Assembly (NCBI RefSeq): GCF_039654945.1
Contig: NW_027361932.1
Location: forward strand, 17,174,001-17,238,000
Length of the DNA stretch: 64,000 nucleotides
Direction of reading: 5' to 3'
Source of the DNA: Dendrobates tinctorius
Taxonomy: Eukaryota
A program made the translations under genes and the position numbers. Positions 45,401 to 57,755 of the stretch are shown here, piece by piece. Under the pieces are notes generated by a model. It ran no database searches and was not told where the DNA came from. It saw nothing but the letters and a program-made list of their open reading frames with translations. Numbering within the stretch: position 1 is the stretch's first letter; each line of letters opens with the position of its first letter.

Positions 45401-48400
45401 AATTTTGCATTGAAAAAGTCAAACGGCGCTCCTTGCCTTCTGAGCTCTGCCATGCGCCGAAACTGTGGGTCCCCCCAAGTTATCAGGTATCAGCGTACTC
45501 AGGACAAATTGCACAATAACTTTTGCAGTCCAATTTGTCCTGTTGCCCTTGGTAAAATAAAAAAAAATTGAACCTGAAGTATTTTTTTTGTGAAAAAAAG
45601 TTAGATATTCATTTTTTTTTTTTTTCAATATTCAAAAAATTCTTGTGACGCACCTAAAGGGTTAATAAACTTCTTGAATGTGGTTTTGAGCACCTTAAGG
45701 GGTGCAATTTTTAGAATGGTGTCACTTTTGGGTATTTTCTATCATATAGACCCCTCAAAGTGGCTTCAAATGTGATGTGGTCCGTAAAAATAAAATGGTG
45801 TTGCAAAAATGAGAAATCGCTGGTCATTTTTTAACCCTTATAACTTCCTAACAAAAAAAATTTTGGTTCCAAAATTGTGCTGATATAAAGTAAACATGTG
45901 GGAAATGTTATCAAGTTTTTTGTGTGCCGTATCTCTGTGATTTAAGGGCATAAAAATTCAAAGTTGGAAAATTGCGAAATTTTCAAAATTTTCGCCAAAT
46001 TTGCATTTTTTTCACAAATAAACGCAAGTTATTTGAATGAAATTTTACCACTATCATGAAGTACAATATGTTATGAGAAAACAGTGTCAGAATCAGCGGG
46101 ATCCATAGAAGCGTTCCAGAGTTATGACCTCATAAAGGGACAGTGGTCAGAATTGTAAAAATTGGCCCGGTCATGAACGTGCAAACCACCCTTGGGGGTG
46201 AAGGGGTTAAAGAAGACATTGGTACAGCGTTGAAACATGTTTTGAATAAAAAGCCTTTCTCGTTCGCCTTATTGGGGGACACAGAGACCATGGGTGTATG
46301 CTTTGCTGCCACTAGGAGGCTGACACTATGCACAAAAAAATGTTAGCTCCTCCTCCGCAGTGTACACCCCACCGACCGGCACCAATTTCCTCAGTTTAGC
46401 TTAGTGTCAGTAGGAGGTGGACACGGGTCTTTCATTAGACCCATATCTACCTCGTCGTGCGTCGTTCCTTTACAGGTTCTACGGAGGGATACAGAGTGAA
46501 AAGTCACATCTGTACTCCCACATGGCGTCTGCGAGTACGGCGTGTACTGCCACCCGGTATCCTTGCAGTTCTCCGCGGCAGGACCAGCCAGACGGACGCC
46601 GACACCAAGACGTGCCAGCGACTCCAGGGGTCCTTGTCGCCAGTCTCCCTACCAGAGCCTGTCGGTTGGATGAGACGCAGGACTTCTTCAGACCCAGGTA
46701 ACGGATCGGGGATGGGTGAGTATAGATTTTTATTACCTGGCTGCTCATTCCCGACGGACAGGGGGCCTCTTCAATGGCACAGGGATGCGGGCACTGCGGG
46801 CGCTCGCAGTCGCCCTACATCTATAGGCACACCATGCTCTTTTTTGCTGGCCCCGCATTCCCCCCCCCCTCCCCCTTTCTGGGGAAAAGGGAGCACAGGG
46901 CCTTTTTCCTTTCCTCCCCTTGAGAGCGGCTTGCAGCTGCGGCGTCCCCTTCTTCCGACCTCCGCGCCTACCGCCTGCTGACAGGCGGCTGCCGCAACTA
47001 ATTTAGGCCCCGGCTTCAGTTTGGGCCTACCGCTGCGTCGCGGCCACGCCCCCCGCCCCTTTCTTCTAAGCGGGCTTCTCTCCCGCTCTTCCCAGGCCCT
47101 CCCACCGCCTGTCCTTCACCTGCCCAGCCTGCCATTGGCTAGAGGGCGGTGAATTTTAACCCTGCGATGTGCTCCGCCCTCCCTCCTCTCCTGGACGCGC
47201 GCTCTTTCTCAGGCAGGCGCCATTTTACCAGCCTGTTAGCCGGACACCAGCTCGTCACCGGATCATCTTCTGCCAGCTGGTTTTTTCGTTCAGGAGGTCT
47301 ATCGGCCGGATTTCGCTCTGACCTGCATCCACTGACAGGTCGCAGAGCATCGCTTCTGGGGACACCGGACCGTGAGTAGCTCTGCACTGCAGACTGACCC
47401 TTCTCCGCCCTCTGTCCCCCAACCTTCCGGCATTACCTTAGCTTTTCACTATGTCTACCTCTAAGTCTGATCGTACCCGCTCTACTGCCCCCCCCCCTGC
47501 ACTTTAGTCAAGTTCTTTGCATGTTCTTCGTGCAATCGCAAACTTCCAACAGGCCAGTCCACTCCCCTCTGCCTGGATTGTAGCAACCCAATTCAGCCTG
47601 ACGCCGTCCAGGAGCCATCTACGGCTCCAGGTGAGAGTGAACCCCCCATGCCTGGCTGGGCCTCCTCGCTATCTCAATCAGTGGCAGACCTCACCAAGGT
47701 GTCTCAGTCCCTGGTGGCCGTTCTTGATAAGTTGCCCCTGGACTCTTCAGCAGGGCCAAGCAGGTCCCAAATTGTTCCATCTGAGTCAGCCAGCGTTAGT
47801 CGCAAAAGACCCAGGCAAGATGCCCAGCCGGATTCCTCTCCTCGTCCCATCTCACCGCATAGCCCTTCTCAGCAGCCTCCCTCTCGGGCCTCCTCTCCCG
47901 AGTCAGGTGAAGCACTTTCGGACAGGTCATCTGAGGGGATTTTAGAGCTGGATTCAGACCAGGGTGCAAACATGAAGGTCACAGTGCAGAACCTCATTGC
48001 AGCGATCCATCATACTTTCGATATTGCTGACTCCCCTGCGAAATCCTCAGATCAGGAGGTTTCGTTCAGACGGGCAGAAACTCCCTCCAGGGTTTTTCCT
48101 TTCCATTCCGAGTTTGGGAAGATTTTTACCAAGGAAAGAGAGGATCCGACCATACGCTTTCAAAGAGGAAAACGTCTAGGCGTACTCTACCCATTTGCTA
48201 AGGAGCTCACGGACAACTGGTCGGCCTCTCCCTCGGTGGATCCGCCCGTGTCCAGGCTTTCCAATAACACGGTTCTCCCGCTTTCAGGCGTGGCGTCCCT
48301 AAAGGATTCTAATGACAGGATTATAGAATCCCTGGCAAAGTCTGCCTTTGAAGCGGCTTCAGCGGCTGTGTGCCCAATCTTTTCTTCATCCTGGGCAGCA

Positions 48401-51400
48401 AAGGCCATAGCCACGTGGGCAGACGACCTTCGTCAAGGCGTGTTAGATAAGGCGCAACCGGAGCGTTTTTCCGATCTCGCCAATCAGATCTCCCATGCTG
48501 GGGACTATCTTCTTTCCGCTTCCTTGGATGCCGCATCCTGTGCAGTTCAGACGTCAAGCAACGTAGTTGTAATTCGACGTACAGTTTGGCTAAAGGCCTG
48601 GCAAGCGGACTTCTCTTCTAAAAAGTCCCTCACTAACCTGCCTTTTCAGGGGGTGCGCCTCTTTGGGTCCCAATTGGACCAGATTATTAAGGACGCCACC
48701 GGAGTCACGAGTTCACTTCTCCCTCAGTCCAATCCTCGCAGACCTCCACTAAGGCATCAGTTTCGACCCTTTCGGACTTTCCGCCGTTTCAATACGGCGG
48801 ACAACTCCTCCAGCCAACAGAGACCGCAGGCTCGCCAGGAGAGAAAGGAAAGTTTCCTTCAGACCCACTCCTTCCTGGCGATCCCACTCTTCCCAGGGCA
48901 GACCGTCCAGATCTGGATCTGGACGGTCTACTTCAGCATGACTATCGTCGGACACGCGAGGGGCCTTTCCAATTGGGAGGCCGACTTCCTTCCTTCAGGG
49001 ACGTTTGGCTGGCCTCCGTAGAGGACGCTTGGGTCAGGGAGGTCGTATCCTCAGGATACAAGATACAGTTCGTCTCTCTCCCACGGGATCGTTTCTTCGA
49101 ATCCCGGCCTCCAAAGGATCCAGCCTTGGTCCCGGGGTTCTCTACGGCTATCGCCTCTCTCCTCAGACAGCACCACTACCAGCTCGTCGCACTGCCCTTC
49201 GGTCTTGCCACCGCTCCCAGACTCTTCACGAAGATCGTGGCTGCGTTGATGGCTTTGTTGAGAGTCAGAGGTCTCGTTCTTTTCCCGTACCTAGACGATA
49301 TTCTGATCAGGGCTCCCTCATTTCAACAGGCTCACCAAAGTTTGTCAATCGTCCTGGACACTCTTTCCAATTTCGGGTGGATCGTCAACAGGAAAAAGTC
49401 CTGTCTGGTTCCTACCCAACGCCTGGTCTTTCTAGGCCTTCTGTTCGACACTCGTTGGTCAAGGGTCTTTCTCCCACAAGAGAAGATTCTCTCTCTGCAG
49501 CAGGAAGTACGATCGCTGCAGATCTCACGATTCCCGTCCCTCCGTACAGCCAGGAGGGTCCTGGGAAAGATGGTGGCGGCGATAGAGGCAGTTCCCTTTG
49601 CCCAATTTCACGCCAGACCTCTCCAGCAGGCCATTCTGTCGAAGTGGAACAGGTCGCCTCGGTCCCTGGATCGCCCTGTTCCTCCTTCTTACCGGATCAA
49701 GCGGTCCCTCAACTGGTGGTTGTCGTCACCTCTCATTCTATCGGGTCGATTCTTCCTTCCCATTCGCTGGCAGATAGTAACCACAGATGCCAGTCTCCTC
49801 GGTTGGGGTGCAGTGTTCCGCAACCACACTGTTCAGGGTCGATGTTCGGATCGGGAATCAGTACCAATCAACATTCTGGAGATTCGAGCTATCCATCTTG
49901 CTCTCGTTCACTGGGAAAGGCTCCTCAAGGGACTGCCGGTACGGATTCAGACAGACCGCCACAGCGGTGGCATATGTCTACCGCCAAGGGGGAACACTGA
50001 GTGTCTCAGCCCTGGCGGAGGGGTCCAAGATTCTTCGTTGGGCGGAGATTTCCGTTCAGACAATTTCCGCGGTGCACATTCCCGGCGTAGACAACTGGGC
50101 CGACGATTTTCTCAGCCGCAAGGGTCTCGCGGCGGGAGAGTGGTCCCTCCATCCGGAGGTGTTTCATCTGCTCTGCCTTCGGTGGGGAACCCCGGATGTA
50201 GACCTCATGGCGTCTCGCCTCAACAGGAAAGTCCCACAATTCGTGTCCAGGTCTCGGGACCCTCTGGCAGTGGGCGCCGACGCCCTGGCCGTTCCTTGGT
50301 CCCAGTTCGACCTTCCCTACCTGTTCCCTCCTCTGCCTCTTCTTCCCAACCTGTTGAAAAAGATCAAGGCAGAAGGAATTCCAGTCATTCTCATCGCCCC
50401 GAATTGGCCCAGAAGGTCTTGGTTCGCGGACATTGTCAACCTTCTCGCGGACGCCCCCTGGAAGCTTCCAGACAGAACAGATCTGCTGTCTCAGGGACCG
50501 ATTTGCCACCCCAATTCTCGGCCGCTCAATTTAACGGCGTGGCTGTTGAGACCAAGGTTCTGAAACGGGTAGGATTTTCCGACCAGGTAGTTCAGACCAT
50601 GATCCGAGCCAGAAAGCCATCATCTTCCAAGATCTACTACCGTACTTGGAAGGCCTATTTCACTTGGTGTGAGACCAATAACATTGCGCCCATGTCCTTT
50701 TATTCGGTCGTCCATGACAGCACCACCTGAGAGAGGGGATCCGCCCTTTTGGAACAGGAAACCTACAGATACAAAAAGGGTGGCACCTCTCCCACGCATC
50801 AGTTGGTTTCCTGTTCCTAACAAGGACAGAACTCCCTACAGATCGTCCGTCATGGATAACTGAAGACCCAGGCCAGCGGACCGGCTCAGGTAGCGGGGGG
50901 TTCTCCTACCTCGGTCTCGCTGGGAGCCCTGGATGCGCCACGGTGGGTCCGGGTAGGATTTCCACGGCAGTGGTAAGAGCAGGCGGAGACAGGGTCCGGC
51001 GGATGCCTTCTCCATGGGACCGGTGATAAGTGGGGTCCCCCTGTGTCTCCTTCCCCGGAGCGGTCCGTTCGGGCGGGCGCCGCCGGCGGTGTCCCACAAA
51101 GGAGCGGACGGTTCCGAGCCGGCGGCGCAGTGCTAGCCCCTTGCCGCGCGTCCCCGCGGCCTCTGTCGCGCGGCGGAAGTGATGGGGCGGGGCCTAGCGC
51201 CGAAACCGGAAGTCGGATGCCGGTCGACTTCCGGTTGTTGAGGACACGCGCCGATGCGGGCCCGCCGCCTGGCGGGCCTGAAGGGGAGGATCGCAGAGCG
51301 GTCCAATGAGGGGCCCGAACACCGGACGCGGTGCCTGCTGATCCGGAGGGGAAGCCTTCTTAATGCAGAAGGCATTGCTGCGGAGGTGCTTCTGGAGGCC

Positions 51401-51804
51401 CAGCGATGGACACAACAGAAGCCCCCAAGGACCCACAAGAGGTGCAGCCCGTGGCAAAGCACCCCAGTGACCAGCCTAAGAGGCGGAAGGAAGGGAGCCA
51501 CAGTAGCTCCTCTAGGCCAAAGGATCCTCCTGCAGCCCCCCGTGATCCGGTACCTATCCTCATCTGCAAGGGTAAGAGATCTGCGAGAATGTACCCTGAT
51601 GCAGTGTCCCTTTATATTTTTTTGATTCTCAGGGGAAGAAGGCCACAGGGAAACAGAAGCACAAGGAATGTGCCCTCTGTAGTTGCCCCTTACCAGATGG
51701 TCACCCTAAGAGATTATGTCAGTCTTGCGTGAGACAGACGGTAGGGACGGAGATGAGGGGTAGAACGTGAGTGGAGTTTCAGACTCTTACACTCTTCCCT
51801 ATTT

Positions 51805-52950
51805 ATGCAGGTAGCGGAAGAAGCTCCAAGCTTCGCTACGGACCTGAGGCAATTAATCAGGACGGAAATAAAAGCCCTATCAAAAGAAGATTCTTCAAAA
51901 AGAGGACGGGCTACTGTTTCAGGCTCAGACTCTTCAGTCGGCCCTAGGAGGGAAGATATCTCCTCAGAGTCCTCGGCCTCCTCTTCTTCCTCCGAAGAAG
52001 ATTCCAGCCGGCTCTGTTTTCCCTTGGACCATATGGATAAATTAATTAAAACCATAAGGTCAACCATGGGGGTAGAAGAAAAAAAGACAGAACTGTCTGC
52101 TCAGGACATTATGTTCGGGGGTCTAGACCCCAGAAAGCAAAGGACCTTTCCGTTAAACGAAAAAGTCCAGAACCTGATAGACAGGGAGTGGAAAAAAACG
52201 GAAAAAAGGGGTTCTATGCCGCCTGCTTTCAAGCGGAGGTACCCCTTTGAGGACCCAATAGTAAGTCGATGGGATAAGGCCCCCAAGCTGGATGCCGCGG
52301 TAGCTAAGGCCTCCAAAAAGTCATCTATACCCTTCGACGATATGGCCTCCCTTAAAGACCCCCTAGATAAAAAGGCAGATTCCTTTTTAAGGGGCACTTG
52401 GGAGATGTCAGCAGGCGCCCTAAGGCCAGCAATAGCAGCCACGTGCGCAGCCAGATCCATGATGGTCTGGCTGTATCAATTGGACTCCCAGCTAAAAGAT
52501 GGGACCTCGCGAGCTTCCATCCGTAAGTCTCTTCCAATTATCCAAAATGCTGCTGCCTTTCTGGCAGATGCCTCGGCAGACTCTGTAAGAATGGCGGCCA
52601 GGTCTGCAAGCTTGTCTAATTCGGCCCGAAGAGCCCTCTGGTTGAAATGCTGGCCGGGAGATATCCAAGCCAGGTCCCGTCTCTGTTCTATCCCCTGTGA
52701 GGGTGAATACTTGTTCGGCCCCGTCCTAGACGAACTGTTAGAGAAAGCCGGGGACGAGAAAAAGACATTTCCGAGTCTGCCGAATATATCCTGGAGACGT
52801 CCCTTTTCTAGGAAAGGGTATTCCCGCAGGAGGCAGGCCAGAGATCAGAACAGATGGGACAACAAAAAAACCAGAGGTACGGGCTTCATGTTCGGAGGAG
52901 GGGGGCGCCAAGAAGGTCCATCACGGGATAATAAGAAACCGCCCCAATGA
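51805..52950 (+). CDS. DIRS C gag-like ORF1, main exon
   Basis: 381-aa open frame homologous to the A/B gag (RRYPF..W...PKLD..KDPLD..RRALWLK.W..D). Confidence 0.85.
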   Translation: MQVAEEAPSFATDLRQLIRTEIKALSKEDSSKRGRATVSGSDSSVGPRREDISSESSASSSSSEEDSSRLCFPLDHMDKLIKTIRSTMGVEEKKTELSAQDIMFGGLDPRKQRTFPLNEKVQNLIDREWKKTEKRGSMPPAFKRRYPFEDPIVSRWDKAPKLDAAVAKASKKSSIPFDDMASLKDPLDKKADSFLRGTWEMSAGALRPAIAATCAARSMMVWLYQLDSQLKDGTSRASIRKSLPIIQNAAAFLADASADSVRMAARSASLSNSARRALWLKCWPGDIQARSRLCSIPCEGEYLFGPVLDELLEKAGDEKKTFPSLPNISWRRPFSRKGYSRRRQARDQNRWDNKKTRGTGFMFGGGGRQEGPSRDNKKPPQ

Positions 52951-54798
52951 CTAGTGGCTCCGGTAGGAGGAAGATTATCTGCCTTCTACCCGGCCTGGGC
53001 CAGAATCTCAAATAGCAGCTGGATACTGGGGGTAATAGCTACAGGACTGCACCTAGAGTTCTCCTGCGTTCCCCAAGACCGGTTCAAGGTAACTCCGCTC
53101 AAATCTTCCCCGCTAGAACAAGCTGCCCTGGAGACCGAGGTCCTCGAGCTACTGGACAAAAAAGTCCTGACGAGAGTTCCAGAGGAAGAGAGGGGGAAAG
53201 GCTTCTATTCCCCCCTGTTCTTGGTCCGTAAACCGGATGACTCATTTAGGGCTATATTTAATCTCAAAGCCCTCAATAAATTTCTGGTAGTTCGACCATT
53301 TAAAATGGAAACAATTAACACCGCAATAAAAATGCTGTTTCAAAACTGCTTCATGGTGGTCCTAGATCTGAAAGACGCATACTACCATATACCCATATGT
53401 CTAGCTCACCAACCTTTCCTTAGACTGGCGGTTCAGTTGGAGGGGTCAATCCAGCACTTCCAGTATGCGGCCTTACCCTTCGGGGTGGCAGTTGCACCCC
53501 GAGTATTCACCAAAGTGATGGCAGAGGTGATGGCCCATCTGCGCGAATTAAATATTCTAGTCGTTCCCTATCTAGATGGCCTCCTTATAATAGGTAGTTC
53601 AGCCGAGCAATGTTTAGAACAGTTACAGAAAACAACGGCGGCTCTAGAGCGGTTGGGATGGTTACTTAATATCAAAAAATCCCGTTTGCAGCCATTAAAA
53701 ATTCAACAATTTTTAGGCCTAACCCTAGATTCTAAAAAACAGGAATGCCGTCTGCCCCCAGAGAAGCTGCTGCACCTACATGGCCGGGTCCTGAACGCTT
53801 TCAACAACCCCTCCATGTCCCTCAGGAAAGCCATGTCCCTGTTGGGTTCCCTCTCGTCCTGCATTCCCGCGGTCCAGTGGGCCCAAGTTCATTCGAGAAC
53901 TCTACAGGGCGAAGTTTTGGGGTATCAGAGGATTCTTGGGGATAACTTAGAAGGTCGACTGACCTTATCCAGAAACACAATAGAGTCCCTGGAATGGTGG
54001 CTAGAAAGAAATAACTTGTCTAGAGGGGTCCCTTGGGAGTATAACATTACCCGCGTGGTCACCACGGATGCAAGTCCTTCCGGTTGGGGGGCGCATATGG
54101 AGAGAATTCTGGTCCAGGGCCTATGGGAACGGGATCAAATACAAATGTCTTCTAATTTAAAAGAATTAACAGCGGTAGCACACACAGCTAAAGAGCTCCT
54201 TATGTATCTACAGGGCCATCACGTACGAGTTCTCTCGGACAATCGAGTGGCCGTGGCCTATATCAATCACCAAGGCGGAACTCGATCCAAAACTCTGATG
54301 AATGTGGCAGGACAGTTGTTCCAGCTAGCGGAGCCGCATTTTTTATCTCTCACGGCTCTTCACATAAGAGGGAAAGAAAACGTTGCGGCAGATTTCCTAA
54401 GCCGCAATCTGTTAAAACAGGGAGAGTGGACCTTAAACACCTCCATTTTTGTTCAGATCGTACAGAGATGGGGTCAACCAGAGGTGGATCTATTCGCCAC
54501 CAAAGAGAACTCAAAAACGAGACAATTTTGCTCCCTAAACCCCAGGGAGATTCCTCTGGCAGTAGATGCGCTACTGATAAAATGGGACTTCAGGCTAGCC
54601 TATGCCTTTCCTCCCCTATCTCTACTTCCTCTGGTGTTGAGGAAGATCAGGAAGGACAAGGCAAGAGTCATAGTCATTGCCCCGTTCTGGCCCAGGAGAG
54701 CATGGTTCTCGAACCTCAGGATCATGTCGATAGACGATCCTTGGGTTCTCCCGGACATCCCGGACCTTCTGTCCCAGGGCCCGGTCTTCCACCCTTAG
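52951..54798 (+). pseudogene. DIRS C RT-RNaseH-methyltransferase-like ORF
   Basis: LDLKDAY, LPFG, YLDG (YLDD lost), TDAS, SDN, ADFLSR, DLFA..YAFPP; premature TAG at 54796. Confidence 0.9.
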
Positions 54799-55856
54799 GT
54801 GGCTGGCCTACATCTCACGGCGTGGAATTTGAGCGGTCACTCCTAAGGGGTAAAGGTTTCTCCCCAGACCTAATTGACACTCTACTAAAAAGTAGGAAAG
54901 TGGTGACAACTAAGATCTACGTCAGAATTTGGAAAAGATTCCTCCAAAGCTCAAATATAAATAATGATGATTCCGTCCCTATAGGCCAGATCTTGGAATT
55001 TTTACAAAAAGGGCTGGACCTGGGTCTCTCCACCAGTACCCTTAAAGTACAGGTATCTGCCTTAGGGGCCCTCTTTAGCTGCAACATCGCTGCTAATTAC
55101 TGGGTCAATAGGTTTATCAAAGCAGCAAGTAGGTCCAGACCAATAGTAAAGAATAGACTCACGCCATGGGATTTGAACCTAGTCCTCACAGCTATGACAG
55201 AAGCGCCATTTGAGCCCATCTCGTCAGCCTCTATTAGGAGCCTGTCCCTCAAGATAGCTTTCCTGATACCCTACGGGCTGACGTTATGGCTAAGCGACAT
55301 TCAGGCATTGTCTAGGCGCCCACCTTTTCTTCAGGTAAAAGAGGATAGGGTAATACTTAGACCTGACCCAGTGTATTTACCAAAAGTAGCCTCCAGCTTT
55401 CATAGGTCGCAGGAAATAGTCCTCCCATCCTTCCTCCCTAAGCCAACTAATGAGAAGGAGGAGAAGCTACACACTTTAGATGTTAGGAGATGCCTCTTAG
55501 AGTATCTAGCGGCTACCGATCCCTGGAAGAAGGACAATGCCCTCTTTGTCTCCTACCAAGGCCCTAGGAAAGGTCTTAGGGTGTCCAAAAGTACTCTAGC
55601 CAGATGGATTAGAGAAGCAATCTCGTTAGCTTATACCTCAAAAGGTAGAGTAGCTCCGGAGAAATTGAAGGCGCATTCCACCAGAGCCATGGCGACCTCG
55701 TGGGCCGAGAGATCGGAAGTCTCCATCGACCAGATTTGTAAGGCGGCCACTTGGTCCTCTCCGAGCACTTTTTATAGTCATTATAGGCTAGACTTGGGTG
55801 CTTCTGCAGACCTCTCCTTCGGTATCAGGGTTTTGCAGGCTGTAGTCCCCCCCTAA
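54426..55856 (+). pseudogene. DIRS C tyrosine recombinase (catalytic Arg motif inverted)
   Basis: AHSTRA, ATW and FYSHY are present; the AITSARRVS motif is replaced by PYGLTLWLS through a 22-bp inversion. Confidence 0.88.
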
Positions 55857-57755
55857 AGTAGTGATTACTCTCTGTAATTCTCTCAGGTGGTGCTGTCATG
55901 GACGACCGAATAAAGTCTTAGTTACTCACCGGTTAACGGTATTTTTCGGAGTCCATGACAGCACCCGTATATTCCCTCCCTTAAATTTAATTGGGGTGTG
56001 CACGTCTATTTCTTGTATGCTCACTGGTGATAAAAGTTTATAATTATAAAGAATACTGTACATAAATCATGCATTAACCTTGGAAGTCCTCTTGTGCTCT
56101 GTAATCCAACTGATGCGTGGGAGAGGTGCCACCCTTTTTGTATCTGTAGGTTTCCTGTTCCTAAAGGGCGGATCCCCTCTCTCAGGTGGTGCTGTCATGG
56201 ACTCCGAAAAATACCGTTAACCGGTGAGTAACTAAGACTTTCGCTCCCTTCAGTCCTAGCGTTTCTTCAGGCAGGATTGGATGCGGGCCTTGCCCTCAGT
56301 TCCCTGAAGGGTCAAGTTTCGGCGCTGTCCATTCTATTTCAGAAAACATTGGCTTCCCGTCCTCAGGTTAAGACCTTTCTTCAGGGCGTGGCTAACACGG
56401 TTCCGCCGTACCGGGCGCCCGTGGATCCATGGGATCTTAATCTGGTTCTTAAGGTTCTGCAAGGTCCTCCCTTTGAACCCCTCAGGGATATTTCCCTTTC
56501 TCTCCTTTCTTGGAAGGTTGTCTTTCTGGTGGCCATCACCTCCGTCCGGCGCGTGTCGGAATTGGCAGCTCTTTCGTGCCGCTCCCATTTTCTGGTGCTC
56601 CACCAGGATAAGGTAGTTCTGCGGCCTCCGCCCTCTTTCCTGCCGAAGGTGGTGTCCTCGTTTCACCTCAACGAGGATATCGTGCTACCATCCTTTTGTC
56701 CGTATCCAACTCATCCCCGAGAGTGGTCCTTGAACAAGCTGGACCTGGTTAGGGCGATAAGAGTCTATCTGTCTAGGACGACTGCCTTGCGAAAGACAGT
56801 CTCTTTTCATTATCCCTGATGGGACGCGGAAAGGTCACTCGGCGTCAAAGGCCACTATTGCTCGCTGGATCAGATCGGCAATTTTGGAAGCCTACCGAGT
56901 TAAGCGTCGCAGAGCCCCTCCAGGGATCAGGGCCCACTTTACTCGGGCAGTGGGTGCCTCCTGGGCGGTGCGCCACAGAGCTTCCGCGCTGCAGCTTTGC
57001 AAAGCTGCAACATGGTCATCGGTTCACACGTTTGTGAAATTCTACAGAGTCCACACCTACGCTTCGGCGGACGCCAGCCTAGGTAGACGGATTCTGCAGG
57101 CCGCGGTGGTGAGTCTGCTGGCCCGATGGAAGTTTGTTTCCCACCCCAGGGACTGCTTTGGGACGTCCCATGGTCTCTGTGTCCCCCAATAAGGCGAACG
57201 AGAAAACAGGATTTTTTGGGTTGCTTACCGTAAAATCTGTTTCTCAGAGCCTTCATTGGGGGACACAGCACCCTCCCATGTTTTACAACTCCTGTTCTTA
57301 TGTTTGTCGGTTGGTTACAGTTGAGTTGTCCTGTTTTCATTCTGTTTTGTTACTTCTCCTACTGCTTTCTCACTAACTGAGGAAATTGCCGGTCAGTGGG
57401 GTGTATACTGCGGAGGAGGAGCTAACATTTTTTTGTGCATAGTGTCAGCCTCCTAGTGGCAGCAAAGCATACACCCATGGTCTCTGTGTCCCCCAATGAA
57501 GGCTCCGAGAAACAGATTTTACGGTAAGCAACCCAAAAATTCCTGTTTTTCCTCATCACCTTGGATCAAAAATGGACATATCTCATTTGGCTTTTTTTGT
57601 GAATGTATGGTTTGCAAGAAAAAAATCACACACGTGAACATCTACATGGGCTATAATGGTTACATGTTCTATCTGTGAAAAGCATAGCTAAAACAAGCCT
57701 CCTGCGTTATAGTCCATTTTTCACGTACGAGGCTTATTTGTTCTTGCACTTGTAG

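Follow-up and report, generated by a model that had tools for sequence, protein, structure and literature searches.

The first open reading frame (ORF1) of a retrotransposon in the frog Dendrobates tinctorius appears to be split by two short introns that the element keeps in its genomic copies. The window analysed here, a 64 kb (64,000 nt) stretch of the genome of this species (contig NW_027361932.1, positions 17,174,001 to 17,238,000 of the forward strand), contains three DIRS elements, called DIRS A, DIRS B and DIRS C, and its best protein matches are in dendrobatid, bufonid and hylid frogs. DIRS elements form the least understood order of retrotransposons and are abundant in large amphibian genomes. 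In DIRS C the frame for Gag is interrupted twice, and sequence comparison makes it quite likely that both interrupting segments are real introns that have to be removed for full Gag to be made. The recurrence of the same architecture in independent copies and species is more than chance. Retroelements normally lose introns, spliced RNA usually being the RNA that is copied; because of this, one that persists in all copies throughout several frog families informs on the choice of template RNA.

Excision of both segments joins exon 1, a finger exon and the gag core (entered at 51811) into a single reading frame (Table 1). ORF1 would then be a three-exon gene with two short U2-type (GT-AG) introns, and its spliced RNA would encode, in order, exon 1, a basic zinc finger with four cysteines (C4) and the LAP2alpha-like core of Gag. 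The signals expected of U2-type introns are found in both segments: GT..AG ends, a 3′ pyrimidine tract, and a branch-like yUnAy motif 18-40 nt before the acceptor. A first-pass annotation of the window had described a CxxC..CxxC finger encoded at 51633-51740, preceded by a polypyrimidine tract ending in TTCTCAG and followed by ACG/GTAGGG (slashes mark exon boundaries), and then a 70-nt segment with an in-frame stop whose removal fuses the finger to gag. Both descriptions hold on re-reading, and the predicted junction is matched without gaps by a relative, locus L004, in which the two exons are contiguous. On unspliced RNA the frame of ATG 51406 stops at 51732 and the finger frame stops within intron 2; because both end early, full Gag would require splicing. 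A U12-type intron was also considered for the GTACCTATCC donor and was dropped: the motif is absent from the relatives.

Table 1. Features of DIRS C and of the finger regions of DIRS A and DIRS B (positions are those of the window).
Feature	Position	Strand	Basis or remarks
ORF1 exon 1, 48 codons from ATG 51406	51406-51549	+	Ends at weak donor CCG/GTACCT
Putative intron 1, 83 nt, GT..AG	51550-51632	+	80% pyrimidine in the 20 nt before AG; branch-like CTGAT at -33
Second, consensus-like donor AGG/GTAAGA inside intron 1	51572-51577	+	In frame with ATG 51254; starts the conserved block
Finger exon, 108 nt, 36 aa: basic stretch, then CxxC-x12-CxxC	51633-51740	+	Translation
Putative intron 2, 70 nt, ACG/GTAGGG..GCAG	51741-51810	+	In-frame stop; branch-like CTTAC at -21
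Gag core exon, LAP2alpha-like domain, stop 52948-52950	51811-52950	+	PF11560, E = 4.5e-16, above cut-off
pol (reverse transcriptase, RNase H, Dam-like methyltransferase)	52954-54798	+	Same frame as gag after UGA-CUA-G; RNase H and Dam matches weak
Tyrosine recombinase (YR) ORF	54426-55856	+	Phage_integrase weak, E = 0.003, below curated cut-off
Internal complementary region (ICR)	55879-55965	+	Pairs I2 and I3 100% complementary to both outer element ends
DIRS C, complete element inside DIRS B	50699-56241	+	Inverted terminal repeats (ITRs), ICR and ORFs
DIRS B finger (CSSC..CLDC)	47510-47581	+	Contiguous, in frame with gag B (frame 2)
DIRS A decayed finger (..FSC..CEAC) after a stop codon	27903-27953	+	Frame 1

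Intron 1 was compared in 11 complete DIRS loci from at least 6 frog species (dendrobatid, bufonid, leptodactylid and hylid). An origin of the gene models from domesticated host genes was rejected, because pol and YR lie directly downstream in every locus. Intron 1 lies at the same site in all 11 loci (and in assembled Logan contigs), about 11 codons before the first Cys. It is 81-102 nt long, with lengths in all three classes modulo 3, and always has GT..AG ends; in 10 of the 11 loci pyrimidines make up 0.70-0.90 of the 20 nt preceding the AG, compared with 0.42-0.46 in exons, and most of the loci have in-frame stops inside it. RefSeq gene models splice it in Ranitomeya imitator, R. variabilis, Bufo gargarizans, Engystomops pustulosus and Dendropsophus ebraccatus, and in this sense they already contain DIRS introns implicitly. 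The first-pass annotation had named alignment of genomic copies as a check; in both segments position and signals are conserved while length and interior drift (intron 1 in 11/11 loci; intron 2, at 70-77 nt, in three). Intron 1 is old and has been retained in every relative examined.

Two candidate donors for intron 1 had been put forward in the first-pass annotation, at 51550 and 51572. Both exist in the frames claimed for them, but the 51550 type alone shares a frame with an upstream ATG in all of the related loci (10/10), and it is this weak CG/GTAYY site that the RefSeq models always use. The other type, a strong GTAAG or GTGAG donor, occurs 19-34 nt further on in 10 of 11 loci, and an ATG shares its frame in just 5 of 10. 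It also marks the start of a block, extending ~25 nt after it, that is the best-conserved part of the whole 5′ region: in dendrobatid copies GG/GTAAGT is followed by GATCTnCGTGAAAGTTCACT, and the block is better conserved than coding exon 1 (window 51572-51600; L001:6215-6245; L003:5715-5745; L004:5770-5800; L006:6221-6251). Identity between the window and the R. imitator loci L003 and L013 is likewise 68-69% in intron 1 and 52-54% in exon 1. The consensus fold of intron 1 is weak (-5 kcal/mol) and shows no covariation. The strong donor may be an ancestral leader-intron donor, an alternative donor, or a U1-binding or template-marking element.

The conserved block raises the alternative that splicing is real but begins mainly at the strong GTAAGT-type site, so that intron 1 is essentially a leader intron, translation starts at another ATG (51254 here, the start of exon 2 in Bufo) and the weak donor has a minor or alternative role. 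Only the choice of donor separates this reading from the best explanation. The strong site is in frame with the 106-codon frame of ATG 51254 in the window and shares the frame of the weak donor in L003 and L013, but the tally of 5 in-frame loci against 10, together with the donor used by all RefSeq models, goes the other way. Similarly, exon 2 of Bufo does begin with an ATG, and a GTAAGG..TGTAG segment ends just ahead of the start codon in Xenopus laevis, but most copies of the dendrobatid type have no ATG in exon 2 before the finger. On balance, use of the strong site as the main donor is unlikely. The Xenopus segment is an observation in its own right: in a complete DIRS element (L014:4930-5000), GTAAGG, a pyrimidine tract and TGTAG are found in a stretch that is separated by 2 nt from the ATG at which the finger-gag ORF starts, a pattern that suggests an older leader intron at the homologous place.

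Intron 2 has a narrower distribution. Among the loci compared it is found only in the window copy and in L003 and L013, which are located on separate chromosomes, resemble each other at 94-97% across all five segments and carry both introns each. Intron 2 in these two copies is 77 nt long and occupies the same nucleotide site (after ..QT, before VAEE..), with GT..AG ends and a 3′ end that is 85-90% pyrimidine, and the finger exon is again 108 nt. Its interior is 57% identical between the window and L003/L013, with the ends and the pyrimidine tract conserved. In the RefSeq model XP_069625301.1, from R. imitator, a finger exon of 108 nt is flanked by two spliced-out introns of 82 nt and 77 nt, which is the structure predicted for the window.

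Other copies have intron 1 and no intron 2. In L004, which comes from D. tinctorius itself, intron 2 is exactly absent and QT-VAEE is contiguous; the predicted QT/VAEE join aligns without a gap to L001 too, and finger and gag are in one continuous frame in L001, L004, L006 and others. The first-pass annotation had held that copies of this kind would mean that the window copy simply has indels. Such copies do exist, but a tree built from 928 gag-plus-pol columns places L004 inside the clade that bears the intron, (winC,(L004,(L003,L013))), with support of 99/98 and 100/100, and because of this nesting the window segment is not a private indel. A single clade of intron-2 holders is rejected by the approximately unbiased (AU) test (p = 1.7e-6), a test somewhat weakened by the group having been named after a quick tree. 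These relationships fit intron 2 being a younger gain, common to one dendrobatid DIRS family and lost exactly in one sublineage, and exact loss is the outcome expected when an RNA from which intron 2 has been spliced out is reverse-transcribed. As a point against this history, gain followed by loss requires two events, and two independent gains at the identical site also require two. A different second intron appears in the RefSeq gag model of a Dendropsophus ebraccatus locus (L008:3273-3380): it is 108 nt long, GTGAGA..TTTTTAG, in phase 2 and ~13 codons after the finger, and is either an independent gain in another DIRS lineage or a prediction artefact.

These comparisons also bear on the idea that a damaged copy acquired the two segments by accidental insertion, with GT..AG ends by coincidence. 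The copies that have finger and gag in one frame and no intron 2, DIRS B among them, are what such an idea would draw on, but DIRS C does not look damaged. Its ITR arms (50710-50809 and 56103-56202) are 100 nt each and 98% complementary, and its gag, pol and YR frames are all open; DIRS C is apparently a young, intact DIRS1-like element. Because the element is intact and young (ITRs 98% alike, ICR 100% complementary, ORFs open), the segments inside its ORF1 are not decay. Coincidence would also have to account for an intron 1 at one site throughout the comparison set, for an intron 2 whose ends outlast its interior in L003 and L013, and for the same motifs in other D. tinctorius subfamilies. 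Conservation across several species has already largely refuted accidental insertion, and we regard it as highly improbable.

The finger exon is itself a conserved part of Gag. The search for gag homologues gave 56 from frogs, and in about 20 of them CxxC-x12-CxxC stands directly before the N-terminal helix of Gag. None of the four Cys varies among 19 aligned relatives, although identity between these sequences is only 23-52%. A profile of the finger region matched 118 cluster representatives among 1.84 billion, and all 20 of those whose source was looked up are from frogs (including Ranitomeya, Bufo, Engystomops, Dendropsophus, Eleutherodactylus, Hyperolius, Gastrophryne and Xenopus). The finger has no Pfam match; it is a conserved, unnamed domain of frog DIRS Gag, and as a basic C4 finger it probably binds nucleic acid. 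The two other elements of the window had been offered as internal controls, and both stand: in DIRS B the finger is contiguous with gag, and in DIRS A it is decayed (Table 1).

Evidence from D. tinctorius itself comes from Logan contigs of four runs, aligned to 50900-52900; none of the runs is on record as RNA, and contigs show neither expression level nor transcript ends. One contig, from run X5, skips exactly 51741-51810 (70 nt, GT..AG ends), and intron 2 is exactly removed in it whatever its nature, be it cDNA or a DNA copy without the intron. Loose contig ends proved to be other subfamilies in D. tinctorius that keep CCG/GTACC, pyrimidine-CAG/GGGA and ACG/GTAGGG. Four Logan ORFs with an apparent N-terminal extension fused to the finger (P0024, P0027, P0030 and P0032) were rejected as evidence of splicing: each begins within the 3′ part of intron 1 or runs through it, and the contigs are unspliced. 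Protein searches with the finger region (P0008 residues 60-125) and with both exon junctions (P0069 residues 17-125) recovered little beyond the queries themselves and no spliced transcript contigs.

Several points count against both segments being introns removed at the proposed sites. First, the contigs of the four runs carry both introns unspliced, at 95-99% identity, and none among them contains an intron 1 joint. Second, the X5 skip has a depth of 5.6, a shorter side of 23 nt and a run of unknown type behind it, and could be an intron-less DNA copy. Third, automated gene prediction can place spurious short introns across frameshifts in repeat copies, which bears on the RefSeq models. Finally, the coding donors are weak; a much stronger one lies ~22 nt downstream, and its use would break the frame in most relatives.

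Taken to their end, such doubts would mean that the intron-like segments are not removed in vivo, that Gag is made from an internal ATG (51805) on unspliced RNA, that exon 1 and the finger are a short upstream product or a relic, and that the gene models are artefacts. The unspliced state of intron 1 in all contigs is in keeping with this, and ATG 51805, the sole start from which the gag core reads without interruption, does open a gag ORF of 381 codons, but this ATG is not conserved (L003 has none there) and several upstream ATGs would precede it on unspliced RNA. RefSeq also includes finger-less gag models, such as P0001 and P0002; against these stands the strong constraint on the finger, which is always joined to the Gag N-terminal helix where no intron intervenes, and L004 has exactly the junction that splicing predicts. 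Production of Gag from unspliced RNA in this way is therefore improbable, and splicing of both segments is the better account of ORF1.

If both introns are spliced, new copies of the element probably derive from unspliced RNA and full Gag from spliced RNA, messenger and template being two different molecules. Unspliced RNA is the likely template for reverse transcription because the copies keep their introns. This division of roles, proposed in the first-pass annotation, is now supported by the conservation of the introns, by the RefSeq models, and by L003 and L013 each carrying both introns. The donors of both introns match the consensus at only 6 of 9 positions, and such weak donors may leave splicing incomplete and thereby maintain a pool of template RNA. 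The gag stop codon UGA is followed by CUA-G (52948-52956), with pol continuing in the same frame, and Gag-Pol is probably made from the spliced RNA by stop-codon readthrough. Proteins made from spliced RNA would then act in trans on unspliced RNA. Trans action of proteins has been shown for DIRS-1 of Dictyostelium (PMC7192593) and is compatible with proteins of one RNA acting on another. Occasional copying of partly spliced RNA would lead to exact loss of intron 2.

A stronger version of this model is possible, though doubtful. Messenger and template would be physically separated: Gag and Gag-Pol would come only from spliced RNA, and only unspliced RNA would be copied, through a cis element in intron 1 (the block at the strong donor) that serves packaging or reverse transcription. 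The introns would in that case be adaptive, in a lineage that is still gaining introns and losing them exactly, as with intron 2 here and the separate 108-nt second intron of a Dendropsophus copy, and the element would offer a natural setting in which to follow how a retroelement gains and loses introns.

Introns retained by retroelements have precedents. The first-pass annotation rightly took retention to be established for Penelope-like elements and overstated its rarity elsewhere, with copia, BARE1, Ogre and CRR as counterexamples (PMC3735527). BARE1 of barley has a small intron (104 nt), spliced RNA for Gag and distinct RNA pools (PMC3735527). In BARE1 and in copia of Drosophila, as proposed for DIRS C, the intron is kept in genomic copies, unspliced RNA is replicated and spliced RNA is translated to Gag (PMC3735527). 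The purpose of splicing differs, however: there it removes or disables pol to shift the Gag:Pol ratio upward, and unspliced RNA can also yield Gag, whereas in DIRS C it would assemble the Gag frame itself, with pol staying downstream in frame, and the element is a tyrosine-recombinase (DIRS) element and not a Copia element. Ogre and CRR, both plant Ty3/gypsy elements, resemble DIRS C as proposed here in having an intron in the coding region that is kept in genomic copies and removed from part of the transcripts (PMC3735527). As cited there, the intron of Ogre, a plant long terminal repeat (LTR) element, lies between ORFs and not at the N-terminus of gag (PMC3735527). Penelope-like elements share the retention of introns through retrotransposition (PMC8557442). 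Retention in their case is attributed to an unusual target-primed mechanism, the introns are often in the 5′ untranslated region (UTR), and the elements have a GIY-YIG endonuclease and neither gag nor YR. The features of a Penelope-like element (a telomerase-like reverse transcriptase fused to a GIY-YIG endonuclease, pseudo-LTRs) are absent from DIRS C, where RVT_1, RNase H, a weak Dam-like match, YR, ITRs and ICR are found instead.

Retroviruses offer a further comparison. In their balanced splicing, weak splice sites leave genome RNA unspliced, and the packaging signal lies after the major 5′ splice site; by analogy, the conserved sequence just inside the DIRS intron could mark unspliced RNA as template. 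The likeness has limits: retroviral Gag comes from unspliced RNA, with env and accessory genes from spliced RNA, so that DIRS C would be the reverse for Gag, and a packaging element was not evident in intron 1, whose consensus fold is weak and without covariation. DIRS C is otherwise like the DIRS1-like elements of vertebrates, which have a LAP2alpha-like gag, reverse transcriptase, RNase H and methyltransferase, YR, ITRs and an ICR (PMC4495291, PMC9210276, PMC3266345), the methyltransferase being represented in DIRS C by a weak Dam match. It differs from them in ORF1, which is treated as uninterrupted, with neither introns nor a zinc finger, in the DIRS papers searched. No description of introns in DIRS ORF1 was found in the literature searched, and the founding papers (Goodwin and Poulter 2001; Poulter and Goodwin 2005; Poulter and Butler 2015) may mention them.

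If Gag needs splicing, there are consequences for annotation and for the biology of the element. Annotation that expects ORF1 to be continuous overlooks the zinc finger at the N-terminus and is wrong about the intactness of copies. The element, for its part, must use host splicing and yet keep that splicing incomplete, which gives a handle on its regulation. The exact presence or absence of intron 2 among close relatives also provides datable cases of intron gain and loss.

Pfam searches of pol in DIRS C gave RVT_1 at E = 7.5e-17, a weaker RT_RNaseH match at E = 8e-5, just under the curated cut-off, and, after RNase H, a Dam match at E = 0.011, below the cut-off. Identity of the YR ORF to its counterparts in 10 related DIRS loci is 48-62%. 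The GC-rich leader (50967-51234) has no contig from runs X1 and X2, guessed to be RNA, whose contigs begin at 51296; X5 and X7 cover it. This gap could reflect a transcription start near 51290 or an assembly effect, between which contigs cannot discriminate. At the right end of the element (56188-56241) there is a strong splice-donor-like motif, CCG/GTGAGTAAC, with its reverse complement in the ICR (55912-55965).

DIRS C is nested in DIRS B, whose coding matches end at 50682 and restart at 56253. The insertion point is in the region of DIRS B where pol and YR overlap, and the match to the recombinase of DIRS B goes on at 56253-57108. In DIRS B the frame of ATG 47452 and the finger frame are offset by one base across a run of ten C (47452-47520), probably a homopolymer indel in the copy or in the assembly. 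A donor-like site, CG/GTGAGT, occurs in the leaders of both DIRS B (47373-47441) and DIRS A (about 27756); in DIRS B it is followed ~69 nt on by a pyrimidine tract and TTAG, just before ATG 47452. The DIRS A and DIRS B families may thus have a leader intron too.

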